From contig VJWM01000044.1 of NCBI GenBank assembly GCA_010909165.1, forward strand, positions 1,364,001-1,428,000: a stretch of 64,000 nucleotides of DNA, given 5' to 3'. The position numbers and the translations under genes are program-made. This DNA is from Anthoceros angustus (lineage: Eukaryota; Plantae; Anthocerotophyta). How positions within the stretch are numbered: position 1 is the stretch's first letter; every line of letters begins with the position of its first letter. This document shows positions 2,931-63,998 of the stretch, one piece after another. The notes beneath the pieces were generated by a model. It ran no database searches. It was not told the origin of the DNA and saw only the letters and a list, made by a program, of their open reading frames with translations.

Positions 2931-3059
2931 CGCCCTCAGGCGTCGTTGCGAACGGCGCCCCTGTTCTCTCAGATGACGCGGCCATGGTTCCACGATTTAC
3001 AAAACTTCGAGTCAGCCTGCGTGCTTGAGTCTTCTGCACCGGCCAGTAGTGCAACTTCC

Positions 3060-6560: not shown

Positions 6561-6573
6561 AAGAGCGCCGGCC

Positions 6574-8065: not shown

Positions 8066-8074
8066 AAGCAGACT

Positions 8075-8810
8075 GCCATGCCGCCACAAGCCGCTCGTAC
8101 GTCCGGGCAATGGACGCCGGCGGCGGAAAGGCCGCGTTCACCGTTCCGCCTGCGCGGGGTGTTGGGGTGAGCGGCCGCTCACCCCGCACACCCCGAGCGG
8201 AGGGCGTCGCCGTCCTTTCTTCCGCCCAGCGCTCATTTCCCGTGCACTGCCCTCCCGCAATGCATTGAGAGCCCCCCAGGTCCGCGATGTCGCCCTTGAT
8301 GCCACACAGTCGGGCGCCGCCAACGCTCCGCATCCCCAACCATGTCCGCTGCCCACCGTGACACCGTCCACGTCGCATCCTCTTCCCGAGAACGCACCTC
8401 TTCGTCTTCCAACACGACTTTTGGCGGTAGTTCGGAGCATGTCGGCGTCATCCGGGATAACGAAGCGGCGCCATGCCGCCACAAGCCGCTAAATGCGTCG
8501 GGCAATGGGCCGGCGGAAAGGCCGCGTTCACCGTTCCGCTGCGGTGTTGGGGTGAGCGCTCACCCAGCGGGCGTCGCCGTCCTTTCTTCCGCCCGCTCAT
8601 TTCCGTGCGCCTCCCGCAATGCATTGAGAGCCCCGGTCCGTGATGTCGCCCTTGATGCCACACAGTCGGCGCGCCAGCGTGCATCGCCCGAACCATGTCC
8701 GTCGCTCCACCGTGACACCGTCCCGTCGCATCCTCTTCCGGCGAGCGCACCTCTTCGTCTTCCAACACGCCGACTTTTGGCGGTAGTTCGGAGCATGTCG
8801 GCGTCATCGG
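8075..8810. repeat. Tandem duplication, two copies of ~395 bp
   Basis: gccatgccgccacaagccgct starts at ~8075 and ~8470. Both copies end in catgtcggcgtcatc. Confidence 0.9.
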
Positions 8811-10930
8811 GATCTGGGATCCCACATATAACGCCCGCAAAACGTTAGCGCTCTCGGATGCGGCCTGGAGGGAAGAGGAGTGGCTCGTCTGCGGAGGACG
8901 GCAGGGCACCGCGGCTTGCACCTTCCGATTTCGCCGATGAAGCGGCCAGGCCCAAAGAGGCTGCGGGCAAGGCGGAAGAGAATCGCCACGTCGACCAGCC
9001 GTACCGGCCAGCTGCCTAATCGAACCATCATACCTCCCCATGGCAACCGGACGCAACCGACGGCAGCAATCCGCAACTCAATCCGCGACAAACCGCCTCT
9101 CCCCATCACCGCTTGTCCTAAGTGGATGCCCTCGTATATGCGCTGGAACCGTGATCTTCAACTTCTTCATGTGCACGCGACCATGCGCGCCTTGTAGACG
9201 CCATCCCCTTTCCGCCTCCCCACGCTGAGACCATTATCGGGTGATTCCGACGTCGTGGAATGTTTCCGCCGCGGACCGTTGCCTCTTCCGCACTTGGGCG
9301 AAGGTGCGTTCTGCGCTTCCCTGGGAGGTTCCTACCATGACCACCTTGGGAAGTAGACGCTAGGCTAGCCGGAGGACCGCCAGACGGCTGGTGTCGCACA
9401 CCCGCGGGCCCTGCGTTCCACGTCTAGCGCAAGTCTGCGGAGGCCGTCGAAGAAGCACAGGCACGAAGGAGGGCGTCCCGATGGGGGTTACATTGGAAAA
9501 CATTGTCGTCATCGTCGTGGACCCAATCCTCCAAGATGTCGCCATCGCAATCGCACCTCATTCAATCTGCGGCGCTCGGGCCTTTCGTCGGTGGCCATGC
9601 CATCAAGAAGATTGCACCGAAATTGGAAATGTCGCGTGAACTGCCCGTGAAGAGAGATGCATACGGGCGCGAGAAGAATGCCGATCTTCCGATGTCATAT
9701 ATCAAACCCTTTTACCTTAGGGCTGCGGATCGCCGTTGCCCGCATGCACACTCTTCGCACGCAGAGAGAGGTCACGCCATTACGTAATCGCCAAATTTTC
9801 TCATCCCGCTTTTCGGATATGCAATTGGGCGGTATATGCCGATGGGAACATGTGCCTGTTTTAAAGGTTTCACCGCCGGCGACGCGCCGCTTGCCGCCTC
9901 CCAAGCAAAAGCGGGTGGCGAGAGGTCATTACGCAATGAGTGAGGAGAGCTGCAATGGATGGGAGGCTCCAGCGCGCCGGGTTCGCCCCAGCCCACACCG
10001 CTGCACCGCAATGCAGAACAAAGCGCCCATGGAAGTCAACAATGGACGGCGGGCGCTGGCGACGGCACCGCCATTTCGTCATCTCCGAATATGGGAAATG
10101 CCATCTGTTCTGTGCAAAACACTGCATGTACCCGAACGCATGCATATATACCGAGTTAGTCCCTAGCCTTCGGCAAAAAAATGCCGGCTTTCAGGTTTGA
10201 TTTTTTATAACCATCGCACAAGGCAAATTTGTCAGCAGTTTCAGGTTGCCCTGGCCTTCGTCACAAACGGGATCGGGTGAATAGCTGGCCAGTATTTCTG
10301 TATCACCATCCTTGGGTTTTGGTGTACCAGAAGAACAGAATAACAGCCAATTGTTTCAAGTCCAACGTGGAAGGGAGGAAATTTGGATGACAGGAAAAAA
10401 TGGGAAAAATGCGACACGCCTCTATCCCTCTACAGTGATGCATGATGCATACGTGGACGACGGTGATATGGTGCATATATAGACATATATTTTGTGCATG
10501 CCTATATGCGCATGTCCATATATGTATGCACACCTCGCATATATACAGTATGACATAAAAGTCTATATCCTTGGCCTATGAAGGAACTTTAAGATGCATG
10601 ACAACTTGTTAAGTTTTTCCACATTCCTTGGTCTTTGGGAAGGTGGGTATGAAATAAATGTCTATATATGCAAGAAGAAGTGAACGCAGTGGCACCAACC
10701 GCCTCTTTCCTTCAGTATGGCAGGTTTTCCATCAATCGGGGACAAACGTCATATGCCTTTCCCGAAGGAACCTTTTCTACAATGCATGTCAAGTTCTTCT
10801 CCGGGTGTTTCCGCCTCTCCCCTTGGTCTTGGCAAACTGTCGAACAACATGTTGGTTTCTCCCATTCCTCCTGCATGTATAGGCATATATTTCATATATG
10901 TGTCTATGTCTGTATTGCATATTTTCGCAT

Positions 10931-12010
10931 GTGACATGTTATGTACATGAATGATTGAAAACCCTCCTTGGCCTTTGGTAGAAGTTCTTACAGTTGTTCC
11001 ATGCGACAAAGTTCCTTGGCCTATGGCGAAGGAACTTTGGAGTACATGGAACAACTTGCCTCCTTTTTTTTCCGTTTCTTTCATGTGACATGTTATGTAC
11101 ATGAATGATTGAAAACCCTCCTTGGCCTTTGGTACAAGTGAGACGGCATGCCTTGGTCTTTGAAAGGAAGTTAAATAATAAAAGTCTATCTTTGGAAGAG
11201 GGTGAACTTTTTACATGATGGTGCAAAAGTTGGCTTCCGCTTTTTCCCAAGGAACAACACATGGCAAGTTGTTCCATGCAACGGACAAAGTTCCTTGGCC
11301 TATGGCGAAGGAACTTTGGCCGATGCATGGAACAACTGCCTCCTTTTTCCCCCGAAGTTTCTTTCGCATGTGACATGTTATGTACATGAATGATTGAAAA
11401 CCCTCCTTGGCCTTTGGTACAAGTGAGGCGGCATGCCTTGGTCTTTGAAAGGAAGTTAAATAATAAAAGTCTATAAATCTGGAAGAGGGTGAACTTTTAC
11501 ATGATGGTGCAAAAGTTGGCTTCCGCTTTTTCCCAAGGAACAACTGGGCAAGTTGTTCCATGCAAGTTCCTTGGCCTATGGCGAAGGAACTTTGGCGATG
11601 CATGGAACAACTGCCTTTTTCCCAAGTTTCTTTCGCATGTGACATGTTATGTACATGAATGATTGAAAACCCTCCTTGGCCTTTGGAACAAGTGAGACGG
11701 CATGCCTTGGTCTTTGAAAGGAAGTTAAATAACAAAAGTCTATATATGCTGGAGGAGGGTGAACTTTTTACATGATGGTGCAAAAGTTGGCTTCAGCTTT
11801 TTCCCAAGGAACAACTTGCGACATGGCAGTTGTTCCATGTACCGGACAAAGTTCCTTGGCCTATGGCGAAGGAACTTTGGCCAGATGCATGGAACAACTT
11901 GCCTCCTTTTTCCCCGATGTTTCTTTCCCATATATGACATGTTATTTACATGAATGATTGAAAACCTCCTGGCCTTTGGTAGAAGTGACCGCATGCCTTG
12001 GTCTTTGAAA
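10931..12010. repeat. Tandem array of ~270-295 bp units, each containing a ~62-72 bp hairpin
   Basis: gtgacatgttatgtacatgaatgattg recurs at ~10931, 11086, 11370, 11640 and 11935. The inverted repeat gttgttccatg...aaagttcctt-ggcctatggcg-aaggaacttt...catggaacaac occurs at 10992-11056, 11267-11337, 11551-11612 and 11828-11899. Confidence 0.9.
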
Positions 12011-12319
12011 GTGAGGGGGATCGGGTGGTGTATAAATCACGTGGAATAGCCGGAATGTATGGGGAGACAGTAACCCTGCGCCCCAAGTAGTTGGCTACAT
12101 ACATGGCGATTTGTTGTGAGGGGTGTGCAGTTCGAGAGAGAAGCGGCATGGAACGGCAGCGGCACACCCGTCCCGTCCGGTGGGTTCCCCTACGAAGCGG
12201 CAGGTGAACGTTGGGATGCCAGTCCCGATCATGGTGAGATTGGAAGAACAAACTTGCACATACCAAGGGCAAGAGAAGGAGGAAGCGGCCGACGAAGAAT
12301 GGCGGAAGGGGCGGAGACA

Positions 12320-12800
12320 TCAGATGCGGCCGACGAGTGGTGCATAGAACGGGTAGTGGCCGCGCTGCGCGGCCACCCCGGTGTTGTTCGGGCCAATGGT
12401 GTGCAGGTGATTATGCGTGCGGTGGACACCTCCCGCTTTTCAGACACGGTGTAGGGTGTGCGGAACGCGGTGGACGAACAGCAAGTGTGATGGATGGAGA
12501 GGAAGGAGCTGCGTAGTGGTGCGCGTGCTCGGCCGATGGCGCCGGAACGGTGCAATCGCTTTCCGGCGCGCACATCCTTGGAATGGAAGCGGAGGTTTGC
12601 CTCGCAGTGGCTAGTGGAACGCCGAGGAGGTGGTGCGGAATGTCAAGGAGGACTTTCGTGCGCTTTTAACGATAACAAAGACACGGTAGAGAGCGAAAGG
12701 GGCGGTTGTCGCCCAGTGTGCCTGTGGCCGCCGAGGAGGTGAAGATCCGGTGGGACAAAGGGCAAGGAAGCGGCAGACGAGCCCAAGCGGATGGCTGTGG
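12320..12800 (+). pseudogene. Possible decayed HECT C-lobe remnant
   Basis: Stitched frames read EWCIERVVAALRGHPGVV...VDTSRFSDTV*G..DEQQV*WM..MAPERCNRF / WNGSGGLPRSG / LLTITK..GRLSPS. This is a weak but ordered resemblance to the HECT C-lobe, with stops and frameshifts. Confidence 0.3.
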
Positions 12801-13254
12801 AACGGAAGGCGGAGGAGGAGGAGGCTTGGAGTGGCATGGATGACGGGAGGACGTTGGAGGCGGTGTCGGAGGTGCAGCCGAGGAAGGGTCTAGGAAAACC
12901 TACACGCTTGTCTGTTATATTTTTGCTTGCTATGCGATCACGCTTATGAGCTTGCCATGGTGTGAGTGGCAATGGTAGTAATCGGTGGACCGCGGCTTAT
13001 GTGGACGAGACTAAACCCCAAATAATGGAAACCCCAAATCATGATTGTGAATAGTGATGTGTTTTGGGCGATCAGTATACGCCCACCGCGAGTGTCATGT
13101 GAAGAGGACAGAGTTGGCGGTTACACACCGAACATAAGGAGGGCCAAAAGGGTTGACAAAGCGAGAGACAAAATTTTATGGTTGCCATCCGGCCGCAATC
13201 GAATCGGGTGGTGGACAATTGAGTTCATGATCGGCGGTGGCGGCAGCGGCGGGC

Positions 13255-15350
13255 GGGAGGGCACCGCCTCCCCATGGCGATAGGCGGGCGCCTCCCCATG
13301 GCGATGGAGGCGGCAAATTGGGACTGCGAAATGGGCGGCCCGAATCGGGCCATGGCAGCCAGAGACAACGGCAGACCTCATTGCGAAATAGGAACCCCAG
13401 GTTGCGAGGACACGCGGAGTCGCCAACGTCGACACCGAGGCAGCCAGCCAGGAAGTGCATCGCAATTGGAAAGTAGGGAGCGTAGAAGGGCGCGGAAGGG
13501 GGGGAGTGAAGAAAAAAGGGCACCTCGGGCGTGGAAGGGCGAAACGCGATGGAGGAGGAGCGGATCGCGGTGGTGGCGGCAAGCGGGGAGGGCGGAGGCG
13601 ACGCGGACGCGGGAGCCATGGTGGAGGCCACGCTCCCTATTCCGCTGCCGCTGACGATGGCGGTGGCAGGCATTGGGGGCGAGCCATGGCGGGCGCCTCC
13701 CCATGGCGGGAGGCGGGCGGGGCGGCGGCCCAGGCGGGGGAGGCGAGGGGCAGGGCGCCCTCCCCATGGCGATGGGCGGCGGCGATGGGCGGGGCGGCGG
13801 CAGGCGGCAGGCGGGGAGAGGCACTGCCTCCCCATGGAGAAGGAGGCGGGGCGAGGCGGCGCCTCCCCGATGGAGGCGGCAGGCGGGGCCCCATGCAGGG
13901 GGGAGGGCACCGTGCCCTCCCCATGGCGATGGAGGCGGAGGCGGGGAGGCCGAGGCGCCCGCCCTCCAAGGAAAGGGGCCGTGGCCTCCGGCGATGGAGG
14001 CGGCAGGGGCGGGCGCGGGGAGGCGCCTCCGCCTCCCCATGGAGAAGGAGGCGGGGCGAGGCGCCGCCGATGGAGGCGGGTTGCCTCCCCATGGCGGCGG
14101 CAGGGGAGGGCACTGTGCCTCCCCATGGCGATGGAGGCGGGCGGGAGGCGAGGCGCCGCCGAGGCCGAGCTCGGGCATGGCGGTGGAGGCGGGGGCCTGT
14201 GCAGTGGGCAGGCGGGGAGGGCACCGCCTCCCCATGGCGATGGAGGCGGGCGGGAGGCAGGCGCCCGCCCTCGAAGGAAAGGGGCAGCTGGCCTCTCGGG
14301 CGAGGCGGAGGCAGCGGGGCGGCGATGGAGGCGGGGGAGGCACTCGCCTCCCCATGGCGATGGAGGCGGGGGAGGCGAGGCGCCCGCCTCGAAGGAAAGG
14401 GGCCGTGGCCTCCCGGCGCGGAGGCGGGGACCCAGGGCGAGCAGCGGGGAGGGCGCCTCCCCATGGTGATGGAGGAGGCGGTGGGCTCGGCGGAGGAGCC
14501 ATGGCGGCGGAGGAGCGGGAGGGGCGGTTGCCCTCCCACAGCGATGGCGGGGCGAGGCGCCTCCCAGCGATGGAGGAGGAGGAGGAGGCGGAGCATGGCG
14601 CCGAGGAGGAAGGCAACCCCGCCTTTGGGGACGGGGTCGTTGAGGACGGCGAGGCGATTACCGCCGCCCGAGGCCGAGGGGAGGAGGGATGGCGGCAGGC
14701 CTCACGCCGCCGCGCCCGAGCCGGAGGCCGAGCTCGGGCATGGCGGTGGCGGCGGCGCCTCCGCCGCCGCCATGCCCGAGCCGGAGGTGGAGCATGGTGG
14801 CGGCGAGCGATGATCGCCGCCGCCGAGGCCGACGGAGGGCCTAGCGATGGCGAGGCGGGGATGCGGAAGGCGGATGGGGGCGACGCCGCCGCCATGCCCG
14901 AGCGGAGGCGAGCCATGGCGGCGGGGCGGCGATCGCAGGAGTGGAGTGGGCGCCATCCGGTTGAGGAAGGCTTATGGGAGGAATAACCAGTTCCATCGGT
15001 GGCGGCATCTCGGCGTGGGCGAGCGCCATGGCGATAGGCGGGGCGAGGCTCGGGAGGCGGGGAGGAGGAGCGGAGGCGGCGCGAGCTCACTGGTGGAGGG
15101 AGCATCCGGCACACTGTAGGAGGAGGAGGAGGAGGAGGAGGGGGGAGCAACGCACTGACGGCGGGGGAGCGGAGGCCATGTCGGAAGAAGAAGGAGAGCG
15201 AGTGCGCCCAACCCCAACTCATGGAGGCGAGCACAAGGGGAGGCGCGACTACAGTCGGACACGTGTCCGCGGGAAGCGCGGGCGGCGGGTGCCTCCGACG
15301 CCCAATGCCCGGACGCCCCTGGAGGAGGCGGGCGCCTCCCCATGGAGAAG
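13255..15350. repeat. GC-rich satellite/minisatellite built on a (G)CCTCCCCATGG(CGATGGAGGCGG) motif, with a ~120 bp higher-order unit
   Basis: More than a dozen ctccccatgg copies lie between ~13268 and ~15340. Units of ~120 bp containing aaggaaaggggc recur at ~13905, ~14215 and ~14335. Confidence 0.85.
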
Positions 15351-16430
15351 GAGAGCGATGAACATGGAATGCTCGGCCGTCAGGCCATGGAGGCACAATT
15401 AAGGTTCTCCGCAGATGAAGCGCATGGAGGACGAGGGAAGTAGGCGGCCGTCATCCCTTGTGCTCGAGTTGCATCACCAGTAGGTTTTGCATAGGGGCGA
15501 AGCATGCGCCTTAGGAAGGCAGAGGAGATAGGGTTGGATGCTAGCCGCAATTTTGCGATGTGTGCGGTGGACATCCTTTTTGATCAATGCACCCCTTCAT
15601 AAAATTTCGGCTCTTGCGCCTATCCGTTCTTGGCGAGGTTGTTGGGTGGCGGTGGTGGTGGGTTCTTGCCGCCATGGCGGCGTGTTTGTGCCGACCATTG
15701 TGGTGAATATGTATGCCAAGGGTGGCGATTGGAGGACGGCCAGGAGTGTTTCATAGACTTGGTCGAGGATGTGGTTACCTAGACTTGCATAATAGGAGGG
15801 AATTCACCACGTGTGCGTGATGCCCTTCATGTATACCGTGATATGGAAGAATAAGGCATGGGTCTACCCAATTGGCCACCCATCCCTCTTCCACCGTGGA
15901 GGTGGATCCGCTAGCAGGCCGCAACGCATACCCTAAACCCTACAAACAAGAATCCATTGTCCCTAGATAAGAAGACACGGACACGCGCGGCGTGTGCGGG
16001 GTTCGCAATGGGCGTGCCCTCGCCGTCATTGCCTTGCAAGCCCATGGCCGGGCCGTTTAAGGGCAACCACATTGCGTGGCTCGCGGGCGGGTTAGGATTT
16101 GCTTATGGATAGCATCAAAGAAAACTTAATCGCAGGAGGAAGTGTGGAAAACTTGAAAACATAGTTTCGGTCCGGCTCTTTGTTTTCAAAGTTGGAAGGA
16201 CAAAACATTTAAACCAAACTTAGGGTTTGGACTGAAAGTGTGTGTCCCCTTTGGTGCTTGGCAGCTCTTGGTTAGGCGCCAAAGCGGCCATGTGGGCATG
16301 TGCTCAAAGAAACCGTCTGGAATGTAGGGTATATTCCTCAAGATCCCCACGCCTTGCATGGGTTTCGCGAAAAAAAAAATGTCCCATCCCCTCTGTCCCC
16401 TTTGGTATGCCATACTTATGTCAAAGGTTA

Positions 16431-19700: not shown

Positions 19701-20461
19701 ACTTGTCCTGTGCTCCTACACTGTCCATCAATTACAGTAACCTGCACGCCCTTGCTCGACCTAAACAGCGTGCAAGAGCTTCCTTTCCGAACGCTCCTTC
19801 CTGTTCCTGCAAGAGGTGTTAGGGTTTAGGGCGGGCACGTGACGGTGAAGAAGACGAGGTGCAATACTGTTGAGGTATCAACAATATGAAACTCAAAAGG
19901 TCTGTCCTGGTCCCGGTCCCGAGACGTGCAGCCAGCCAGCGTCATGCGCAGTCCGAGTCGTGACGCGTGGATGTTGCTGTTGTTGCTTTCTTTCCTTTCT
20001 TCCCTCCCTCGAGTGGCGGCAGGAAGTGCGCGGGGAGAAGCGCGGCGCGGAACATGGAGGCGTTGAGAGAGCAAGGCGGACGGATGCATTTTTGGGAGCA
20101 AGTTAGGCGAGTGGGTGCAGGGGAAACGACAGGGCAGCAAGAATCTGGTGACAAACGGATGGCCTCATTTAGCTTAAGTCAAAGGAATCTTGTCGGTGGA
20201 GTTGGTCATTCCATGGCGTCCTGGCTCCTTCTCCCCGTCCCGTGCCCGCGCAAGGCTGCGGTGTTGCGGCCTGGCGGGAGGCGTTGCCGGGCTGCAGGGC
20301 CTCGGCCTCGGCCTCGGCCTCGGCCACGCCCCCTCCTCCTCCTCCCTGGGCCCAGCGTCGGACCTGGGCCCCTCCCGTCCCCGCGCCAGGAAGGAATTGC
20401 GCCCCCGCCTCCCCGCACTCCCGCACTCCAATCGCACCCCGATCGCTTCCCGGCCGCAGCC

Positions 20462-21939
20462 ATGGAGGAGCCGGCGGCGCTCACGGACCACCACGGCTTC
20501 TACTCCGACCTCTTCGCGCCCTCGGACGGGGGTCCTTCCTGGAGGCCTTCCCGGGCATGCATCTGGAGGAGGACCTCTGGGCGGACGTGCTGGACGGGGG
20601 GCAGCCCGGGCTGCGCTCCGTGACCGAGATGGAGGCCCCGGAGCCGCCCGAGCCCGAGGCCGCCGCCAGGGAGGCTTCCGGGTCCCCGCCCTCGGCCGGG
20701 TCGGGGTCCGGGAAGCGGCGGGATGGCCGGCAGGGGCAGGGGCAGGCGCAGGGGAAGGGGAAGGAGCGGGAGAAGGAAAGGGACAGGGAGCGGGAGAAGG
20801 AGAGCCGGTGGGCCGAGCAGCTGCTGAACCAGTGCGCGGCGGCCATAGCCGGGAACAATGCGGTGCGGACGCAGCACCTAATGTGGGTGCTGAATGATCT
20901 GGCCAGCTTTACCGGAGATGCGAACCAGCGCCTGGCGGCGTACGGGCTGAAGGCGCTCTTCTGCCGGGTGACGGGGGCGGGGGAGGCAACGTCCGCGAGC
21001 TACTACAACGGGCTGGAGGGGTTCAATTCGCTCACCCCGAAGGCGGTGCATCGGGCGTTGTTGAAGTTCCAGGATGTGAGCCCCTGGCACCAGCTGGGTC
21101 ACGCGGTGGGGAACGGGGCGCTGCTGGAGGCCATGGAGGGGCAGCACCGGGTGCACGTGGTGGACATCGGGGTGAGCTTGGGGACGCAGTGGCCGACGCT
21201 CATGGAGGCGCTGGCGACCCGGGCGGCGGGCCCGCCGACGTTGTTGCGCATCACCTTGGTGATGGACCAGGGCGTGCCGTCCGCGTCGTCCGAGTTCCTG
21301 CTCTGCCTCGAGAGGTTCGCCAAGTTCATGGGCCTGCAGGTGGAGATCAACACGGTGATCGGGCCGCTGCTGGCGCTGAGCCAGGCCGCGCTGGGGTTGC
21401 GGGAGCAGGAGGCGCTGGCCGTGTGCGCGCAGTTCCGGCTGCACGCGCTGAGCGAGGAGGCCGTGTGCGGGCCCTCGGCTAGGGACTCGTTCCTCGGGGT
21501 TTTGCGCTCGCTGCGGCCTCTGGTGATGGTGCTCAGCGAGAACGACTGCCCGCACCTCGCGCCCGAGTTTGCTGCCAGGTTTCCGCATGTGGCGTCGTTT
21601 TTCTGGCGGTTCTTCGACTCCAACGCTGCGTCGTATAAGGGCAAGGCCAGTGAGGAGCGGCAGATCGTGGAGTACGAGGCCGGGATGATGATGCTCAACG
21701 CCGTCGCCTGCGACGGGCTCACCAGGATCGAGCGCAACGAGCCCCACGCCGGCTGGGTGGCCAGGATGCACCGGGCTGCCTTCGCGCCCGCCGCTCTCAG
21801 CGAGGACGTCCTGGATAATGCAAGGGCTGTTCTCAGGAAATACGACTCGCAGTGGGACCTGCTCCTCGACATGGACTGCGCCGTGCTCTTGTGGAAGAAC
21901 CAGCCCGTCACCTTCTGCTCCGTCTGGACCTGCTCTTGA
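20462..21939 (+). CDS. NSP1: GRAS transcription factor, NSP1-like (SHR/NSP1 clade), intronless
   Basis: WAEQLLNQCAAAI, GDANQRLAAYGLKAL, HVVDIGVSLGTQWPTLMEAL (VHIID), FFDS and C-terminal SVW (SAW). The in-frame ATG is at 20557. The likely true ATG at 20462 needs one extra G in the run at ~20528-20532. The symbol rests on motif recognition only. Confidence 0.85.
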
Positions 21940-24274
21940 TCACTCCCTCTTCTTATTCTTTTTCCTTCTGCTTCCCTTCCTTCCTTCCTTCCCTCCAAAG
22001 TAGCAGCAATTCCCATACCCTTGCCTGGCTTCTACCATGCTTCATTCCGGGGCAGCAGTAGGTAATTGTCATCCATGTCTTGCTTTTTTTCGTTGTTGCG
22101 GTCTTCCTCTTAATTAATTAGGAGGAAGGCAAGGCAGGCAAAGCGAAAGGCACATGGCACATGGCACATGGACTGAGCCATTTGACAAGTGGTTTGTTTT
22201 CTTCCTGTGTTGCAGAACTTGCCACTGTGGAACACTGCCGAACAAGGCAGCTAGCAGCAAGTTGAGAACTTCAAACTGAGGGAGGGCCCCATGCCCCTGG
22301 CTTGCAATTGGCGGGAGCGGAATTTCGTGCAAAACAATTTCACAAGTTTATTGCTGCACTTAACTCAATCAATGACGTGAAGCGGCTGCTCTTCTTCCAC
22401 TTCACTGAGACATGAGATTCCCAGCGAGGCTCGGACCACCTACACTTGAATACGATGTACACGCATCATCATTTATCACTCACCCACAAGGTGTCCGCCA
22501 CTTTCTCGAATGGAATAAAGCTTTCGTCTGCAGCCTTCATGTACATATACGCATTTTGTTCCACAATGTTGCACCACGTGCGAACATTCATCACACCTTT
22601 CCCTACTCACGTAGGCAACAGAACAGAATCACATATCTACGCTGCAGCCTATCGCCTGCTTCTCGTACAGAACATAACTGCCTACAAGGGAACCAAGCAG
22701 CCAATCAGTCTGCCTACCTATCCGATGCCTGACCACATTAGATTTTGAAATGTGTACATATCTAGGAATAAAGAAAAAAATCCTCTGCGACACCGGGAGT
22801 GGAAGTCGATATTCCTCGCATCAGGCTCCACCCGTGAGTCGTGACGCCGGGCCCTCCGCAAGTCTTCAGCAAACAAGAATGAGAAGCGAGACGTGATTCC
22901 CAAGCGCGTCCACCACTACAAATCACTGTTCCAGTTTACGCTCGCCCACAACTCAAGGCTGGATGATTCTGTCCGTGGCCAGGACCCGGCTGCTGCTGGA
23001 GCCCGGGCGCAGGAAAAAATATCAAGCCTTGAGGTGTGAGCAAGAGTAAAGAGAATCAGTCGCAAGAGGGCCACTGGCCGTGGACGAGAACTTCCGGGAA
23101 GCTACTCGCGCTCTGCCCTGCACAAGCTTCGATATCATGCAACACCGACGTCCTCAATCACATCCCACCTGTGTGGACATCCAATGCAGCTAACGAGGCA
23201 AGCTTAAGGTTGCAGCGACGTGAGCAACACACACAACAGCCAAGTCATACAAACGTCGTCAGGAAAACAGTCCCGTCCACACTGTTTCCCACAACTCTGC
23301 ATCACAAAAACCTCCAGCGCATTCTTCTACACAGGACGCCGCAACTTGAAGAAAACGAGGCAGCAAACACATAAAACAGCAAGCGGGTGAGGACCGGTGA
23401 CGAAACAGCAGCAATGCAGGATGGAATAACACGCAACTCCAGACACGCTCGAGGCAGGCTTGCTTGCTTGCTTGCAAGCAACAGAAAGCAGGCCCAGCAG
23501 CAAAGAACCGCACACAGCAGCAGCGAGGCTCCACGATCCAGACATGACATGATCTGGGACCCGGCTGCTTGCGATTTTATACCCGACGCGCCCAATCCAT
23601 GACAGTTTCAGAATATTCCGGCTTCAGTTGAGTCGCATTGCGCGGCCCGGCCCGGTCCCGGCCCCGGCCCCGCGGCCGCAAACGGAATACAGTGCGGCCC
23701 GAAACGGGCCGGCCCGGCCCGCCAGGCTGTGCGGGGGCCGTGCTCGTGGGCCCGATTTGCATGTGCCACTGAAACGCATAGCCCAGCAGGGCCACTCCAT
23801 GCTTATCCCATTATGGCTCTGCCATGCGGCCCGAAACGGGCCGACTGTCCCACGTCCGGAATCACGTCTTTCCTATAATGCTATAAGCACTCATATTTCC
23901 TGAGTCCTCCACTCACCCGCTCTCATCTACCCTGTCCTCGCGCCACACGTGGCCCGATCACGTACGGTGGCGATTCAAGCTCACACCTCAAGCGTGGCAC
24001 AGTGCACTGCAGTCCCTGGAGCATCCATGGCTCGTGTGCACTTCTGCACTGTGCGCCAGAGCGCAGTAGCCTCTCAGGTCTGTCATGCTGTCTGCCCTCG
24101 CCTCTGCTTCTGCTCTGATCGATGCCGCTCTTCTGTGCTCTCTGCGCTGCCGCGCATTGGTTCATGTCAGATTTTCGCCAGGCTTGCACGTTGCGCTGAT
24201 AGGATTCCGCTGTACAGATCCCGTGAAGCAGTCCTGCTGCGCTGCTGCAATTGCACGGACGCATCGGCGCCTCG

Positions 24275-25553: not shown

Positions 25554-26643
25554 TTAGAAATCCAGCCCTTGCTCACCCACCACCTCAACAACTGGCTCTT
25601 CCTGTTCCTGTGCAGGTACTACCAGCTTCTCATGCAGCCAATGCCTGAGAGTGGTGACAGCATCGTCCAGGTCGGCATCTTCGTCCACGGACTTGGGCCG
25701 ATGGGCAAACGCATGGCCTCTGCCTGTGTAGACCTTCGCCACCGACCCGGGCACAGCTTGCTCCAGCTGGCGCACAACCTCCACAGGGCACAGGGGATCA
25801 CCATCCCCCGCGATGAGCAGTAGAGGGATCCGTATCCGGGCGGCCAGGGCCGAGTCGAACCTGGTCCCGTAGAAGAAAGCGGCGGCCCCGAATCTTCCCT
25901 GCTCGTCTCTCGCCAGGGTCTCGATCAGCCGGCCCCCGCCGAAGCAGAAGCCAACAAGAGCGAGCTTGTCCGGCTTGTCGCTACCCCCGGACAGCTCCTG
26001 GTTCAGCCAGTTGGTGGCGGCGTCTATGTCCTCCTCCACCTGCTCCCGCGGGTGCAGGCTCCGCCAGTCCTCGTACTCGGACTTGTCCCGCTCTTCCGAC
26101 CAGGGCACGCCGCGGAACAGGTCCGGCAGCAGAACGTTGTAGCCGAAACACGCCAGCTCGTTCACGAACGCCCGTGTGTCGGTGTCCTGGTGTCCAAACA
26201 CATCCGAGAGCACCACCACCCCGAGCCCGTTGTTGTTCTTGAGTGCCTGCACGAAGAACGCCCCTATCCGACCGATCTTCACCTCCGACCCGCTCACCAG
26301 CTCACACTCCTCGTCCGCTTCCATATCCTGCTCCTTCTCCTCTACCTGCGCCCTGGGCCGCCACCTTCTCCTCACCTCTGCAGACCGCGCGTGCCTTCAT
26401 GAGCAAGATGCCTACACTGGCAGTGAATTAATGCACGGTGTGCCAAGAGGACATACCAGGCTGAGAGGACTCAACTTGGTGAATGTTTCTGTTTGGCCCG
26501 CTGCGGAGATGCAGTGTCGAGGTGGAGAGGGAAGAGCGGCGGCCACGGGAATATGGCCCGACCAGTGTCCCACGTGCCGCCAAGCCTCTAGGCAGAGAGG
26601 CCGGCACACAACAGTAGCTCGGGAGCTTAATCAAAGTAGCCAT
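25554..26643 (-). CDS. Dienelactone hydrolase family alpha/beta hydrolase, probably plastid-targeted; exons 26643-26457 and 26377-25554
   Basis: Nucleophile elbow GFCFGG, IAGDGDP, and GRGHAFAHRP with the catalytic His. Exon 1 resembles a Ser/Arg-rich transit peptide and is joined by a phase-1 GT-AG intron. Confidence 0.9.
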
Positions 26644-34905: not shown

Positions 34906-38137
<3,232 letters not shown>

Positions 38138-42171: not shown

Positions 42172-45100
42172 ATGGAGAGCAGATTTCTCCAGGCACTTGA
42201 ACTGATTGTCCTTGCTCTGGCCGTCCTTGCTGCTACCTCTGATGCCGCCAGACAGGTCCCATCCGCAGGAATTGGTTCCAGGGAAGGACGCTCCAGCAAC
42301 GCCTCCGCCTCCCTCGCAGGTCTGGGTAAATGGACAGACGAGCAGTTGGCTGGCCTCAATCTCCCGCCATTCAGAACGATAAACCGAAGGTCTTTGCTGA
42401 GCTGCGACGATCCCAACCCCTACCTTGCCATAAGCTTGGACACGGGAGGCCCGCTCAACGATGTGCAGGAGGTCTCTGTCACGGTGTCAGGAATTCTTGA
42501 CCCAAGCGACGGGGATTGGATTGCGATGATGTCGCCCTCAGATTCGGAGTGAGTTCGAATTCCAAACCTCTGCCAGTTAGGAGGAGCCTCAGAGAGTGTC
42601 AGTCTGGAGTTGGTGGGATGCATGCAATTTGCAATTTCCATTCCTGACTCGGGGATCCCGACCAGCACTGGCCTCTGTCCGCAGAACAAGGCACTGTATG
42701 TTGAAACAGGCGACCTCAGCAGTCTGCCTCTCCTTTGCCACTATCCTGTCAAGGTACGAGGCCACCATGCTGTGATGCCGGTTATGGTTCAAGTTCTTGG
42801 CTCACAGTTGATGCATGTTCTTGGCTCACAGTTGAAGCATTTATGGTCTCACAGTTTCTCTACGTGAGTGCCGATCCCGGCTATCTCAGTTGCGCAAACA
42901 GCCAATGCCAGAAGTCCATAGCCGGTGTCTGCGTAGTGAAGACATGCAGTGGCACGGTCAAATTCAGGCTGATCAACATCCGCAGCGACGTTGTGTTTGT
43001 CTTCTTCACTGGTGGAATGGATACTCCCTGCATTCTCACCCAGTCCGACACACTCTCGTTTGGCAACCCCGCGTCTCCACTGTATCCGCATCTCAGCAGC
43101 GTGGATTCCTCGGGGACTGCGGTAACCTGAGCTGTGCTGTCCTTGTTTCTGTCGCACTGGAGCAGGCGCTTCCGCCTGTGGTAGTGCTACACACACACGA
43201 AGTACAAGTTCATTTGAACAAATGTGCGGCTGCAGGTCAAGGTGACATGGGTGAGTGGCAACGGTGATGCTCAACAAGTTCAATGGAATCAACAGCAAGC
43301 GTCTTCCTCTGTGGATTCATTCCAAGCCAGCGACATGTGTGGTCAGCAAATTTTACACCATAATCTCCTCTGCAGTGGCTTCCATGCATGGTGGAGTCAT
43401 ACTACTGGTGCACTTGTGTAGATGCGGTGCCCAATCCGGCAACGGACTTCGGATGGCATGATCCTGGGTATATTCACAGTGCAGTCATGACAGGACTGAG
43501 CCCTTCGACCTCCTACAGCTACGTTTACGGCAGGTAACACTCTCTATAAGCAGCTGCTCTTACTGTTGAGGAGACCTGCGTCTCATCGATTCCTGAGCGA
43601 AGGTCGTTGATGCCACAGCGATGCAGCGGGATGGAGTCCAAGCATCAGCTTCCGAACCCCTCCTGCAGCTGGCAGTGGCAGTCTAAAGTTCATAATTTAT
43701 GGGGACATGGGCAAAACTGAGCAAGACAACGGTTTGGAGCATTACATCCAGGTGAGGGGGAGGAAGATTGTCCGAAGGGTAGGCAAGAGGATTTATTGCA
43801 TCAACGTTCAAAGCTAACAGTGCAGCTCGCTGAGGTGCACAGCCAGGAGCGCTGGGAGTGATAAACGCAGTCGCTCAGAAAGTGGCAAACAATCAGGTGG
43901 ATGTTGTTTTCCACATAGGGGACATCAGTTATGCTACTGGATTTCTTGTGGAGTGGGATTCTTTTCTGGAAATGATCACCCCCGTGGCGTCTCATGTCTC
44001 TTACATGACCGGCATAGGCAACCACGAACGGTAAAGGCGTGTGCAGCTTGGTAGGATCATATGACACCTGTCCCGGGACTAACTGAAAGTCATTGCCAAA
44101 TGTGACAGTGACTTTCCTGATTCGGGATCCTACTACGGGCTTCCAGATTCAGGAGGGGAATGTGGAGTTCCATACAACAAGTATTTCCCAATGCCTGTAC
44201 AGGAGGCGGACAAGCCTTGGTATTCGATTGAGTTTGGGCCAGTGCATTTCACCATCATGTCCACAGAGCACGAGTGGTCATCTGGATCTGAGCAGGTAGG
44301 TTGCAACTTAACATCAACTCTGCTGCAGACTACAAACGATGGGCGCTAATAACACACCTTGTCTTTTATCTGTCACAGTACATCTGGATTCAGTCGGACC
44401 TCCATTCTGTTGATCGGACTCGCACACCATGGGTGATCTTTACTGGGTAAGAGCCGCGACAGCGATTTTTGTTTGCCCATTTTCATTTCTACCTGCTCAT
44501 CAATGCTGTCTGTAGACATCGGCCGATGTACTCTTCAGTGAAGCCCGGTTTGGCTTCAGCCCTGGCGCCTAGCGTTGACCCCGACTTTGTGGCAGCAGTC
44601 GAGCCCCTCCTTCATGATGCACAAGTAACACAAGCGATAATCTAGCCCTGTTCTTGGTCGGCTTGTGCAGCTCCTGATGTCAAAAATTGGGCAACTGCAG
44701 GTAGACGTGGTTTTCTGGGGCCACGTTCACAACTTTGAGAGGACATGTTCCGTGTTCCAAGGGAACTGTGCTGGAGGGGATGAAACTGCTCCAATCCACG
44801 TTGTGGTCGGCATGGCAGGATTTCAGTTGGATGACTTTGAGGATGACGTGAGTACCTATATTTCAGCAACTAGGTCGATGATGGGTATTGTAGGAGGCGT
44901 GCTGAACTAACTAGGTCGTCAATTGTGTTGTCATTGCTCCTTCTTTGGTCCGGTCAGACCCCCAGTTGGAGCGTCTTCAGGACTTCCCAATATGGATATG
45001 CTGAGATCTTGGTCGATTCAGTGACAGGTGGTTCACAGCTGACCTTCAACGTAAGTGCCTCTCACCTCTCCCATGGGGTTAGAAAGTGTTGCATGGCAGC

Positions 45101-45191
45101 TTTACCTTATCACCATATCGTATTCTCGCAGTTTGTGACGTCGTCGGACGGGAAGGTGGCAGACTCGTTTGTGCTGAACAAAAACCTGTAG
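42172..45191 (+). CDS. Secreted purple acid phosphatase (nucleotide pyrophosphatase/phosphodiesterase-type), multi-exon
   Basis: Signal peptide followed by all five metal-ligand motifs: GDMG, GDISY, GNHE, FTGHR and GHVH. Ends DSFVLNKNL*. Confidence 0.92.
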
Positions 45192-45385
45192 CCTATGTGG
45201 CTGCTTCCATTATCACGTTATCTATTAGTATCAAGACTTTAGGACTCTTCCATGGCTTCGATAAACAGTAACTCCGGCCTATGATCGTATCCGTTTTCAG
45301 CTCTGATAACTGGAGTCACCAAGGCAGATAGAACCAACCGCTTTATTTCCTGCTATAAAAAAATGTTGTAATTTTACAGAAACCA

Positions 45386-48300
45386 TTAAGACCATATATC
45401 CCTCACATAGCGGCCTTGCTTTGTCATCTCGTTGAGATGTGCAATTGCCATACTTTCCTTGAGACCACCATGCACCTGAAGAACCTGAAGAAGAGTTAAG
45501 TGAACATCCTTTGCCATGCTGGCTCCATCCCTGCAAGCCACACGAGATCATATTACGTTGTTACGAAAACTTCTGTAATCACCACTCAAACATAGATCGA
45601 TAAGACGTTTCTGCCGACACCGCAACATACCCACAGATGTAGACGTGGCTGCGAGTGTTGAGTAGTACAGAGCACAGCGCCTGCCCATGCTCTTTCATCT
45701 TGTCCTGAACATACACCTGGGCAGCACGTGCACAAAATACGTCACAAAGGGAGCAGTCAGCAATATCACTCGATGCCTCAAGTTTCTACGGGCACCATCT
45801 TACCTTCTTCTCTGATGCTCGAGAAAATGCCACTTCGAAATAAGAAAGTGTCCCGTCCTTGGCAAACTGCTCAAAGTCACTCTGGTATAGATAGTCTTCA
45901 TCTGCCCTTCGACATCCAAAAAACAACCAAGAGTCGCCCACACCCGACTCTGGAGATACTTGCATTGCCTTGCGGCGCTCCTGAAGAAATCCTCGAAAAG
46001 GAGCCACACCAGTGCCTGGCCCAATCATAATGATGGGTGTGCTTAAATCAGCAGGATGGTGAAATGCTCCACCACTCTTGAGGAAAATAGGTATCTGCAG
46101 ATCAGCAACATCTCCTCTTGTTTCCAGCTCCAACACCTTTTCCAACCAGTTAGTGCAAACTCCCTTGAAGACTCTACCTTCTTTACTTTCGAGCTTCACA
46201 ACACTAAATGCTATGTCAATGCTATCAGGGCTCTCCGCAGGTGAGCTGGAAACAGAATAATATCTAGAAACAAGAGGAGGTAGACTGTCAAACAGATGCT
46301 CAAGAGGTGGGCTACATGAAGGGAACTCGCCCAATAGATCAACAACATTTGGCCGACCTTCCAGGATATCTTTGGCATAAAGCTCCCTTCCACTACGTGA
46401 GCACAGCAGAAGCAGCCTGGCCTTCTCTTCCGCATCTGATGTGTACTCAGCTAACATTCGGAGAAAACCTTTTGTAGGAACGCCTGTCAAACTACAGTAC
46501 CTCAGAAGAGCTGTTCTCACTGTGCAAGGACATTTGATGTGAGTACAGACTGCTCCAGCGCCATCCTCTATTCCTTGTAGTCTAAACAACTTACTTCCAT
46601 CAGTCCTTAACCTGACTAAAAGCTTATCCACCAGTTCCTCACTGTTCAAAGGAATCACCCCAATTGAGTCTCCAGGATGATATCTTATGCCACTTCCCTT
46701 GATGTTGACGGTCATGTGAATTACCTTTCGGTCAGACCATTTTGGTGTCATGTACTTGGCTGAGCATACTGAGGCCCAAAATGGAGATGCCGAAGTAAAG
46801 TCCTGTTGATCTCCATTAATACCGTTCTCCACTCTCCCCAAGTCAGCCAGCTCACTCTCTTCCCAGACAATACGTGCACGGCATGGCTGCAAAGCAGGTA
46901 CACCAACTAGCTTGATCTCCTCAGTTGGGGGAGCAACGGTAACAGATGCCTCAACCTCCGGGGCACTGCCTCCTTGCAAAGCTGCAGTCTGCATGGCTGC
47001 TTTTAAAGGGCCCCACAGACCGGCTGTCCACTTATCCACAATATCCTCAAGCCTGTAAAAAATCACTGCAGACATTCAATAAGGTTGATGTAACATCATT
47101 CCAGGCAACTTCTACACAAAAAAAAAAAAAGCAGAAGTACATTAGAGAAGCTACGTAATTTACCCTTCAACTTCATCAGCCTCACAACTTTTATAAAAAC
47201 AATGAGCGCCAAGCTCAGAGAAGCGAGTATTGAATGTTTTTGGCACTCCCATGAACTTGGTGTAATTCGAGTCCCCAAGTCCTGCAGAAACAGCAGTTAG
47301 AGAGAGACATGGCAACTGTTTGGCATGTGCACACAAAAGACTTGGGGTCTCCAAATTTCCATGGTAAGTTTGGCAGCTCTACAGCTCTGGGAATGGTATA
47401 ACGCAGACCGGGATAAAGGTGAATCCTTACCACAGACAGAATACCAGACGTTCCTCAGATAGTTAGGCTCTGAAGCCTTCCTTATGTTTTGATAAAATCT
47501 GTCACAGTTTTCTGGAGGATCTCCATCTCCAGTGCTAGACACTACAAGGACAACGACCTGAATAGTTGGAGAGCGAGCCAGTTTTGCCTAAAAATAAATA
47601 TAAAGGGGAGACTGTTAAGGGGCGTACACCATCCAAATTGCTTGAATTCTGACCATGATCTTCACAAGAGCACACAAGGCTTGGAGCTCACTGCAAAAGA
47701 ATTGGAACTTGGCTTACCAGCGGAAAGTCGTTCATTGCGAAAACACGCGACTTAATCCCTCTACCAGGAGCTTCAGCAGCAATCCCTTTGGCAATCTCCA
47801 TAGAATTGCCAGTTTGTGAACCATATAAGACCAACAAATCCGACTGCCCTGTCACACCTGCAAGTAACTTTACACCATGCCTTTGGTGCACAGAGGGCGC
47901 TCATGAAAAGTGCAGGCGAACGAGAACTGAGAGATCTAGCAGCTTAGCTTCAGATCTGCATGATGAGCTGGATTTCCAGAGCAATGATAACGAACCTGCT
48001 GGAGACGCTCTTGCAGTTCTTGCTTTTAAAGCTGCAGCCATAGCTCTGGCGCCAGGAGAAGCGGACACGCTGTCTTTCAGCTTGGACAGATCGGGCCCCT
48101 TAGATTTATCCTCAAAATCGCTTGCTGAAATTGATTGCTGATCAGAAGATGCTGTAGCTGGTTCCTGGGAGCCTCCAAGCTTGACCCCCGGAGTCTCGCC
48201 TGATCCAGGTGTGTTGTCTGCCAAACTTTCTTCCTGAACACCTTTCTGGACAATGGATTCAATGGGTAGGATCCCTCCCTGCACATCCCCACTTCCAGTG

Positions 48301-48665
48301 GAGGAGCCATTTTCTGCATCCCCATTGCTTCCAACATTTGCAGTCAAAACTCCTGTTGCAGCGGCAGTTCTGGTCCTGTCAGCCACCCGTTCCTCTACCA
48401 GGACAGCCCCCTGTATTGCTGATGCGGGCGGTCCCGCCTTGGGCACACCTGCCTCACGATCCACGGCTCTGCTCTGCCCCAAGTCTCCATCAGCGCCTTC
48501 CCTCAAAACTGCCTCGGGTTTGGGTGCGTAAACCAAGACCGCAACGAGACCCAGGACAACGGAGATCGACACGGGAGAAAAGAACAGCGCAGGGAAGAAG
48601 AACGAAAAGACAAGAAAGGTAACAGACAGCAGAACCAGAAAAACATGATTTCGCATCAGCCCCAT
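45386..48665 (-). CDS. MTRR: Methionine synthase reductase-like diflavin (FMN/FAD/NADPH) oxidoreductase, with a probable hydrophobic N-terminal extension exon (48665-47996)
   Basis: FMN motifs LYGSQTGNS, SSTGDGDPP and LGDSNY; ADEVEGLEDIVDKWTAGLW; RYYSVSSS; GVCTNWL; MIGPGTGVAPFRGF; FFGCR; HVYICG; C-terminus RYVRDIWS*. The diagnostic segments resemble MTRR more than CPR or ATR3. The join to the extension exon is inferred. Confidence 0.8.
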
Positions 48666-49061
48666 GGCAGCAGAAACTGTCCTAACTCAGTCAAGCCAGG
48701 CGCTGGAGCTGCCAACATCCGGAGAGAATACCCCCATTCCTTTCCAAAGGAAACCCAATCTACAATTCTGGAAAGGCAACAAGAGCTGTGGTCCGAAGGA
48801 CTACGAAAGTCCGAAAATCGGGTCTCTATGAGGTCGCAGTTCGACCAAGAGAAAGGTTTGCACACGAGATACAAAATCATGCAACACAACAGACCTTGAA
48901 CGCTAATCAGAGCCAGAGATTTTTGAACGAATTGCGACTGTTTACTTCAATAAACTTCGCACAAAAGCGAGAACAGCTGAACGAGATCCAATTACATTTG
49001 TAGCAACAAGTACACATTTGATTTACGAATGTGATGTATGTTGAGTGTGATTAAAAACTAT

Positions 49062-49550
49062 CTATGGTATCATCACAAATTCAGAAGTAATATTATCAAA
49101 ATAAGGATTTAATGGTGATGTATCATATCGGATATAACAATCATGCAATCCTATCGTCGTACCACGAGCACTTTTACATATCTCGAAAGCAAGAGTGTAG
49201 GCATTTTGAAGACAATATTCACATTCGGGCATTTGAATTATGCGGGAACAGCCACCATCTGCATATATTGTACGGTAATCATGTGGAACACGATAATTAG
49301 GACTCACATTGGTTGGTGCTTCAATAGGAGCAACCGTTGAGGTACTGTATGTGTAACCATGTGAAGCAGCCATTCTTACCACCTCTTGCAATGCCACTTC
49401 TGTAGCTTGTATTACTAAAATATCCCCATCCAGTTTATCGGGACTACATCTTTCTAACGTGAGAGCTATGTTCACAGATTCTGCATAAGAAAAAAGAAAG
49501 GAATTCCATAAAATCATTAGCCCACCCAACCAAACTTTCATGTGTACCAT
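49062..49550 (-). CDS. Secreted single-domain Gnk2/DUF26 cysteine-rich protein
   Basis: Signal peptide, C-X8-C-X2-C (CSRIIQMPECEYC) and CYIRYD. Intronless, 162 aa. Confidence 0.8.
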   Translation of the reverse strand: MVHMKVWLGGLMILWNSFLFSYAESVNIALTLERCSPDKLDGDILVIQATEVALQEVVRMAASHGYTYSTSTVAPIEAPTNVSPNYRVPHDYRTIYADGGCSRIIQMPECEYCLQNAYTLAFEICKSARGTTIGLHDCYIRYDTSPLNPYFDNITSEFVMIP

Positions 49551-62882: not shown

Positions 62883-63998
62883 CTAATGGCCTTGCTTCTC
62901 GTTCCAGTGCTGGAGAAGGTCCTTGCTAGCTTCGTAGGTCGACCAGCAGATGGCTGCGGCAGGGGTGTGGAACATCACACGTGGTCTCAAGCCCTTCCAC
63001 AGCGCCCATGTACCCTCGTGTGCTACAATCTTTCGAACAACATCCAAAATTGATGTGCTGTGAAAACGCTCCGCACCACAAACTCCCTGCATTCGCACAG
63101 CTGGTTCGTTAGGCCCAATTGCGTCCAGCTAGTCAAACAGAATTGCATCAAGAAAGGAGACCGACCGAGTGCTGGCACTTTATATGAGAGGTTAAATCTT
63201 GCAAAGTACCTGAGTTTGCAAACGTGTCTTCACAACATCCAAGGGCGTGGTGATAGCACTCGCAAGGGCTCCAGCCACCCCACCAGCCGTCATATGTGTA
63301 AATAAAGTTTCGTCATCTGACTGAGAGACAGCCTTCTTTGCTGCCTCATATGAAGCAAAATGCACAGCGGTGAACGGGATGTTCATCATGACTGTCGTCC
63401 TGTAAGATGCATAAAAGGCCCTAATACCCTCGTGCTTCAGCATCTGTCTGACGCAGTCTACAAGACCCCTGTAAGGACTTTGCTTCAGCTGCAACCTTTG
63501 CTTTACAACATCCATGGGAGTCAGAACTGCATCACTGGCTGTAGTTGCAACCGCCCCTGCCAATGCATGGGCAAAGGGATGATGGCCCTCCCTGTTACCT
63601 CCAAACTTCTCCTTGCAGACCTCATAGACTGAAAAGTAGACAGCATGTGCTGGTCCAGCTCCTAGTCCCATTGCTCCAATTCCTCTGTACAACCCTGAAG
63701 CACCCTCACTCTTCAGTATGGAAGAAAAAGCTCTCGACACTTGAGTTTTAGCACCAGGAGCGGACAAAACTTGCATGCGTGTCTTAACTGTATCAATAGG
63801 GAACATGGCCATGTGTTCCACCATTCCTGCTACAGATCCAGCGAGCATGTGCTGTTTAAACGTAACGTCATACGAAACTGGGTCTCTCCGTATTTGAGGG
63901 GATTGGTCGTCAATATCCTTCACTGCAACACCTTTGTCACCTGTATACCATTTCTGCCAACCGTTTGCCCCATTATCCTTCAGCACATCACCTTCCAT
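62883..63998 (-). CDS. Mitoferrin-like mitochondrial carrier; exons 63998-63210 and 63086-62883
   Basis: Three Px(D/E)xxKxRxQ repeats (PIDTVKTRMQ, PMDVVKQRLQ, PLDVVKTRLQ), EHMAMFP, GPAHAVYF and NIPFTAVHF. The ATG is 2 nt from the window edge, so the true start could lie outside. Confidence 0.92.

Follow-up and report, generated by a model that had tools for sequence, protein, structure and literature searches.

The stretch of DNA analysed here (64,000 nucleotides (nts) of contig VJWM01000044.1; hereafter the window, in whose numbering all positions are given) carries on its minus strand a gene for a diflavin reductase, a putative methionine synthase reductase (MTRR). The complete frame is composed of seven exons with 2565 nts and encodes 854 amino acids followed by a stop codon. 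It starts with an ATG at 48665, which is preceded by an in-frame stop seven codons to the 5′ side, and the last base of its stop codon is 45386. Every intron is bounded by GT..AG and is 87-149 nts long, and none of the exons contains an internal stop. An earlier note on this DNA had described an intact multi-exon gene at 45386-47857. This interval corresponds exactly to exons 2-7, with 47857 opening exon 2, but the coding exon upstream of it (48665-47996) had been missed. The parts of the gene, in the order of translation, are as follows.

47996..48665, minus strand: coding part of exon 1 (223 codons and 1 nt), the N-terminal extension before the FMN domain; from contigs of runs X2 and X9, described below.
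48516..48659, minus strand: hydrophobic span, residues 3-50, a probable membrane hairpin anchor; from Kyte-Doolittle hydropathy, recurring in relatives.
48018..48095, minus strand: conserved motif PDLSKLKDSVSASPGARAMAAALKAR, which closes the disordered linker; nearly identical in the related locus L002.
47718..47857, minus strand: exon 2, start of the FMN domain with the LLVLYGSQTGNS phosphate loop; from Pfam Flavodoxin_1 and the splice joints.
47431..47587, minus strand: exon 3, carrying the SSTGDGDPPEN loop of the FMN domain, which is of the MTRR-clade type; from the transcript contig and translation.
47164..47281, minus strand: exon 4, carrying the (G)LGDSNY loop of the FMN domain; from Pfam Flavodoxin_1.
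45804..47052, minus strand: exon 5 (416 codons), which completes the FMN domain and continues through the hinge and the connecting and FAD domains (RYYSVSSS) into the NADPH domain, whose first part it holds (GPGTGVAPFRGF, AFSRASEKK); from Pfam FAD_binding_1 and NAD_binding_1, PDB matches and trees.
45631..45716, minus strand: exon 6, NADPH domain (VYVQDKM...VYIC); from the splice joints and translation.
45386..45530, minus strand: exon 7, completing the NADPH domain with RYVRDIWS at the C-terminus, and stop codon; from the splice joints and translation.

A spliced contig of 3974 nts from run X2, placed on 45300-48750, matched all the exons with 0 differences and 0 gaps, and skipped six blocks, all with GT..AG ends on the minus strand. 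Because the DNA contigs of run X1, which shares one sample with X2 and was the best DNA holder of the locus, read through these blocks, the X2 contig was regarded as a spliced transcript. Organism B is a related species, with contigs of run X9 that are approximately 90-99% identical. In these contigs, five of the six splice joints were at identical positions, and exon 1 was also joined to exon 2, with the joint shifted by a few bases. The contigs of both species join exon 1 to exon 2 without a break in the frame. The searches used single exons as the query, and the continuity of the frame was obtained by arithmetic and exon-by-exon translation. It is an intact gene that is transcribed and spliced.

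The summed contig depth of X1 was two- to three-fold higher over 46924-47271 and 47504-47619, and a second, divergent X1 contig of 212 nts (20 differences) was found over 46974-47191. These signals may correspond to a short repeat or a paralogous fragment that overlaps the hinge-coding part and intron 4.

Pfam placed Flavodoxin_1 (PF00258) on exons 2 and 4, and FAD_binding_1 (PF00667, E = 1e-55) and NAD_binding_1 (PF00175) on exon 5. The FMN, FAD and NADPH domains belong to one chain, since the exons are linked by one spliced transcript contig. The cofactor motifs SQTGNS, SSTGDGDPP, LGDSNY, RYYSVSSS, GPGTGVAPFRGF, AFSR..K.Y and the C-terminal DIWS are intact and match the consensus of the MTRR clade. 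The aromatic residue that MTRRs have over the FAD at the C-terminus is likewise present. The four motifs that the earlier note had cited for an MTRR were all present, as ADEVEG followed by LEDIVDKWTAGLWGPL across the junction of exons 4 and 5, RMLAEYTSDAEEKARLLLLCS, KGVCTNWL, and the C-terminal RYVRDIWS directly before the stop codon. These segments follow the consensus of MTRR (LE..V..W..GLW, R.LAEY.SD..E..RLL.LCS and G.CT.WL) and not that of NADPH-cytochrome P450 reductase (CPR).

One alternative is that the gene is a CPR/ATR1-2 paralogue, namely a membrane-anchored diflavin reductase that serves P450s and not methionine synthase. CPR has an N-terminal hydrophobic anchor, as the window protein probably does, and when the exon carrying the FAD and NADPH domains was compared with PDB, CPR ranked above human MTRR (237 bits vs 214 bits for 2qtl), so the PDB ranking alone is ambiguous. 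The FMN loops, however, separate the two families. The states SSTGDGDPP and GLGDSNY of the window protein are those of the MTRR clade and were found in 0 of the 22 CPRs, whereas the CPR signatures ATYGEGDPT and GLGNxxY were found in all 22 and are absent from the window protein. In addition, the two CPRs inspected for this feature (P0090 and P0076) have a single hydrophobic segment, compared with the Pro-kinked double one of the window protein, and the double hairpin with a linker of roughly 170 residues is shared with algal MTRRs.

The family was then determined by phylogeny. A word search with the 429-aa open reading frame (ORF) that holds exon 5 gave the UniRef methionine synthase reductase of Klebsormidium nitens as the best named relative (46% identity), followed by chlorophyte and Phytophthora MTRRs, and later by animal MTRRs and animal and plant CPRs at about 215-260 bits. 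The length window of this search left out the full-length green MTRRs (850-1130 aa), and these were recovered by a region search with P0002, a member of the streptophyte clade described below. In a tree of 65 rows rooted on E. coli CysJ, all the 22 CPRs, including those of plants, formed one clade with a support of 99 in the Shimodaira-Hasegawa-like approximate likelihood ratio test (SH-aLRT). The window protein was located in the MTRR clade (96) together with the MTRRs of fish, Nematostella, Basidiobolus and Phytophthora, and was nested first in a green clade (99) and then in a streptophyte subclade (98). Across the trees, the SH-aLRT support was 96-98 for the MTRR clade, 99 for the green clade and 98-100 for the streptophyte clade. 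When the window protein was held with the CPRs (25 rows, LG+G4), the arrangement was rejected by the approximately unbiased (AU) test, with a log-likelihood (lnL) difference of 64.9 and p = 0.00012. In view of these results, we consider it highly improbable that the gene encodes a CPR.

Another alternative is NDOR1/Tah18/ATR3, the reductase of cytosolic iron-sulfur cluster assembly, which to our knowledge is kept by all plants. This possibility was given its own test because the short FMN exons of the window gene matched the FMN domain of human NDOR1 (4h2d) best among PDB chains, with 21-23 bits per exon; no MTRR FMN-domain chain was matched in these PDB searches, so the ranking involves no comparison with MTRR. 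The green-algal (Astrephomene) protein P0312, which is named NDOR and was obtained by the region search, was accepted as a real NDOR1 orthologue because its FMN domain gave 185 bits to 4h2d and 88 bits to CPR. By comparison, the FMN domain of the MTRR-clade protein of Chara gave 90 bits to 4h2d. In a tree of 38 rows, P0312 was placed outside the MTRR clade (98), and the window protein was four supported nodes inside it. Furthermore, no land-plant ATR3/NDOR1 was found among the best 120 word-search matches to the exon 5 ORF, yet these matches included algal and animal MTRRs and plant CPRs. On this comparison, in which one NDOR1 sequence was placed in the tree, an NDOR1 identity is hardly credible.

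Several points weigh against the assignment to MTRR. The NDOR1 sample in the tree was one sequence (P0312), and this is the weakest point of the family assignment. The PDB ranking of the FAD/NADPH exon, as described above, was led by CPR. The hinge, counted between the alignment anchor columns from the last Trp of the FMN domain to the PF of the FAD domain, is 77 residues long, while the median is 57 in CPRs (range 53-77), 88 in green MTRRs (66-117) and 115 in other MTRRs (82-169); the value exceeds that of a typical CPR, which speaks for MTRR, but it is also at the top of the CPR range, at the low end for MTRRs and under the range of non-green MTRRs. An FMN to FAD hinge much longer than that of other diflavin reductases is considered a peculiarity of the MTRR family (PMC13376404). 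When columns conserved in at least 85% of the CPRs and at least 75% of the non-green MTRRs with differing residues were defined as diagnostic, only five were obtained, and they were split 2 vs 2, which is too few to decide.

With these points taken into account, the phylogeny agrees with the MTRR identity proposed in the earlier note, since the window protein is in the MTRR clade, its grouping with CPRs was rejected, and grouping with NDOR1, for which one sequence was included, was not seen. Considered as a whole, the gene very likely encodes a hornwort orthologue of MTRR, with the mechanism and the N-terminal membrane anchor that we infer below.

The position of the window protein within the MTRR clade also bears on its origin. 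In the 38-row tree, P0001 was the closest relative of the window protein, and the two were sister to Zygnematophyceae-type sequences (Closterium, the SM rows and P0002), and all of these were located within a fully supported streptophyte clade that holds Chara and Klebsormidium. The Logan contig holding P0001 (L002) has the same seven exons, all of them open, with 70-89% identity in exons 2-7 and 31% in exon 1. The identity of the FAD exon to the two members of the streptophyte clade that were measured, Klebsormidium P0004 and P0002, was 46-50%. Horizontal transfer was considered and rejected: the gene tree mirrors the species tree, running from streptophyte algae through the Zygnematophyceae-type rows to the window, and the gene has seven exons of spliceosomal type. 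Judged from this agreement of the trees and from the seven spliced exons, the gene was vertically inherited from streptophyte algae.

Some more distant homologues showed other domain arrangements. The prasinophyte-type and haptophyte MTRR homologues P0302 (Bathycoccus), P0255 (Cymbomonas), P0253 (Pavlova) and P0295 are 950-1130 aa long and have two Flavodoxin_1 stretches, and a helix like the C-terminal one of a flavodoxin (..GLDE.V.PW...LWP.L..) immediately precedes the canonical FMN domain. From this pattern, these four proteins seem to have an additional flavodoxin-like domain in their N-terminal part, behind the anchor. The MTRR-like protein P0311 (1121 aa, from an ENA metagenome) has a Pfam AMPK1_CBM match (CBM48-type) at residues 908-949, between the FAD and NAD domains.

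We next describe the N-terminal extension. Exon 1 adds 223 residues ahead of the FMN domain, which consist of a hydrophobic span, a linker and the motif PDLSKLKDSVSASPGARAMAAALKAR. The span (residues 3-50) has the pattern of a hairpin of approximately 45 residues, in which two stretches of about 20 residues are arranged around a Pro-containing turn, and its Kyte-Doolittle means over 19 residues reach 2.5. It is followed by a disordered linker of about 140 residues, rich in Ala, Gly and Ser, and the motif, which is basic and Ala-rich, stands just before the FMN domain.

A similar layout was observed in relatives. Exon 1 of L002 encodes the hairpin, a diverged linker and PDLSKLKDSVSASPGARAMAAALKAR almost unchanged. 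The transcript contig behind P0002 (L004) is open to the 5′ side of the called start, and this part encodes the hairpin, the linker and SPGARAMAAAMKAR. In Klebsormidium nitens DF237082.1 (L003 4398-5249, plus strand), the frame is open for approximately 190 codons upstream of the annotated P0004 start (locus 5001), with upstream ATGs at 4440 and 4500, and the upstream part encodes a hydrophobic hairpin and a linker. The annotated proteins of Chara and Closterium (920-1064 aa) contain the extension, and a hydrophobic N-terminal feature was also found in P0013 and P0025. In total, 55 of the 88 homologues inspected have an N-terminal hydrophobic span. Motifs such as GGAAILARLRAQR stand before the FMN domain in core chlorophytes, and related basic, Ala-rich motifs are located just before it in MTRRs of the green lineage. 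On the proteins compared, the hairpin-linker-motif layout is the norm of streptophytes and chlorophytes and not a hornwort oddity.

It may be argued that exon 1 is outside the working protein, which would then be a soluble MTRR starting near the FMN domain as in animals, the exon 1 joint being a minor isoform or an assembly artefact. In accordance with that, the annotated Klebsormidium P0004 and the called P0002 begin just before the FMN domain, and isoform proportions, including the share of transcripts that carry exon 1, cannot be derived from contigs, which is a point against an anchored main form. However, the short starts of P0002 and Klebsormidium look like gene-calling truncations because the frame stays open upstream of each of them, and the hairpin, linker and motif are encoded there as well. 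Thus, the public Klebsormidium model P0004 looks truncated at its N terminus. The same in-frame joint of exons 1 and 2 in two species, the extension in the annotated Chara and Closterium proteins, and the nearly identical motif in L002 also disagree with a soluble start, and we regard this explanation as quite unlikely.

The hairpin is probably a membrane anchor that holds the catalytic domains on the cytosolic face by a flexible tether. In several lineages the hydrophobic span has positive residues at either side, which would fit a hairpin whose two ends lie in the cytosol together with the catalytic domains. The predicted insertion is drawn from hydropathy and conservation, which limits the case for an anchor. 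With this in mind, we favour, though not strongly, the view that MTRR of the green lineage, from chlorophytes and streptophyte algae to hornworts, was ancestrally tethered to a membrane, with a Pro-kinked hairpin followed by a long disordered tether and the conserved basic motif. If this is so, and if the B12-dependent methionine synthase (METH) is likewise membrane-bound, B12-dependent methionine synthesis and reactivation would take place on a membrane surface, whereas in animals they are free in the cytosol. The papers searched contained no account of an MTRR with a membrane anchor.

The route of electrons from NADPH through FAD and FMN to the cob(II)alamin of METH is established for human MTRR (PMC13376404). 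Judging from family membership, the window protein would work in a similar way. NADPH would reduce FAD, which in turn would reduce FMN, and the FMN domain, on a hinge longer than that of a typical CPR, would give one electron to cob(II)alamin on METH. The cofactor would then be re-methylated by S-adenosylmethionine, and METH would be reactivated. The activity, the partnership with METH and the membrane tethering of the window protein are predictions made from its sequence.

The retention of METH and MTRR in hornworts, which the earlier note had mentioned, is borne out by Dorrell et al. 2024 (PMC11439496). They reported METH and a "well-conserved" MTRR across hornwort genomes and transcriptomes, grouping with streptophyte sequences, and found both to be absent from land plants other than hornworts. 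The paper also reports METH in Anthoceros, and lists CblB, CblC, CblD and CblJ among the genes that hornworts have.

The strongest alternative that is left accepts a true MTRR orthologue but supposes that the B12 pathway of this plant has stopped working, so that the protein is a relic or now serves a different electron acceptor. Land plants possess the B12-independent METE, and promiscuity can occur among diflavin reductases. Furthermore, B12 use by hornworts still awaits experiment, with neither biochemical nor genetic evidence (PMC11439496), which also speaks against a functional interpretation of the gene. On the other hand, two species have the gene in intact form and make a correctly spliced transcript from it, and the more distant relative L002 keeps all its seven exons open at the identities given above. 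Hornworts have kept METH together with several Cbl-handling genes (PMC11439496), and the retention of both the enzyme and its reactivator speaks for the use of MTRR. We therefore consider a relic or a redeployed enzyme unlikely, and regard a B12-related function of the MTRR as the better explanation; a working B12 pathway in this plant would be consistent with it.

Since MTRR in hornworts was already published in 2024 (PMC11439496), its presence in this window is not new in itself. The present analysis adds one more MTRR orthologue, probably of Anthoceros, with a transcript-verified gene model. It also adds the conserved N-terminal hydrophobic anchor and tether predicted for the green-lineage MTRRs, which are missing in animal MTRR and appear to have been cut off in some public annotations. 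In the main text of PMC11439496 the word 'transmembrane' occurs 0 times, and no mention of an N-terminal extension or of the localisation of MTRR was found there. If the anchor is real, it shows the site of B12-dependent methionine synthesis in algae and hornworts, and it matters for expressing these enzymes or predicting their location when B12 use by hornworts is tested.

Other genes and features were found in the rest of the window. The first of those listed below is an orthologue of the symbiosis-signalling transcription factor NODULATION SIGNALING PATHWAY 1 (NSP1). Its best named matches were from a lycophyte (56%), Marchantia (55%), Ginkgo and a fern (50%) and a moss (47%). In the tree, it branched separately from the clades of liverworts, mosses, lycophytes and seed plants, and did not group with the single fern sampled. 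The earlier note had supposed that the genome is that of a hornwort, and the position of this branch fits, giving indirect support; such a pattern would be expected of a hornwort, since the named matches included no hornwort protein.

20242-21939, plus strand: NSP1 orthologue, a single-exon GRAS gene.
25554-26375, minus strand: ORF of the dienelactone-hydrolase family.
35600-36817, plus strand: exon of a DEAH-type helicase (Helicase_C and HA2).
43388-45200, plus strand: purple-acid-phosphatase-like multi-exon gene (Metallophos; GNHE, GHVHNFER), converging on the 3′ end of the MTRR gene.
49062-49550, minus strand: ORF of 162 aa with a hydrophobic N-terminus and DUF26 (Stress-antifung), just upstream of the MTRR gene.
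63192-63998, minus strand: ORF of a mitochondrial carrier protein.
1-10000, 12000-16000 and 20000-22000: regions of 59-69% G+C with strong GC skew and long overlapping ORFs on both strands; the G+C content elsewhere is about 36-55%.

The X2 contig runs 1096 nts beyond 45300 into the purple-acid-phosphatase-like gene, and the 3′ ends of the two genes may overlap.

Finally, we compared the window protein with the known systems. CPR, represented in plants by ATR1 and ATR2, likewise has the diflavin fold with an N-terminal hydrophobic tether, and is roughly 40% identical in the FAD/NADPH module, but it belongs to a separate clade and has other FMN loop signatures and a typically shorter hinge. NDOR1/Tah18/ATR3 has an FMN domain of the same general type, as reflected in the match of the window FMN exons to 4h2d. 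Human MTRR shares the FMN-hinge-FAD-NADPH architecture, and 2qtl matched over the hinge and the FAD/NADPH region with E = 3e-62. The segments RxLAEYxSD..E..RLLxLCS and GxCTxWL and the C-terminal DIWS of human MTRR agree with the window protein, and the two are located in the same clade. The identity to animal MTRRs is about 33-37%. The hinge of 77 residues is shorter than the median of 115 in non-green MTRRs, and animal MTRRs are without the hydrophobic hairpin, linker and basic motif that are present in the window protein.

The closest named relatives are the MTRRs of streptophyte algae (Chara braunii P0236, Closterium P0230-232 and Klebsormidium P0004), which have the same N-terminal layout. 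Two hydrophobic segments were found in Chara and Klebsormidium and one was detected in Closterium, followed by a linker of approximately 200 residues and then the basic Ala-rich motif. The hornwort MTRRs of Dorrell et al. 2024 (PMC11439496) belong to the same family, with the same three Pfam domains and a similar placement among streptophyte sequences. The species in that paper were Anthoceros agrestis, 'A. punctigera' (the spelling of the paper) and OneKp hornworts, and A. angustus is not listed among them. Unlike in that study, the exon structure and the putatively anchored N-terminus are documented here for the window gene.

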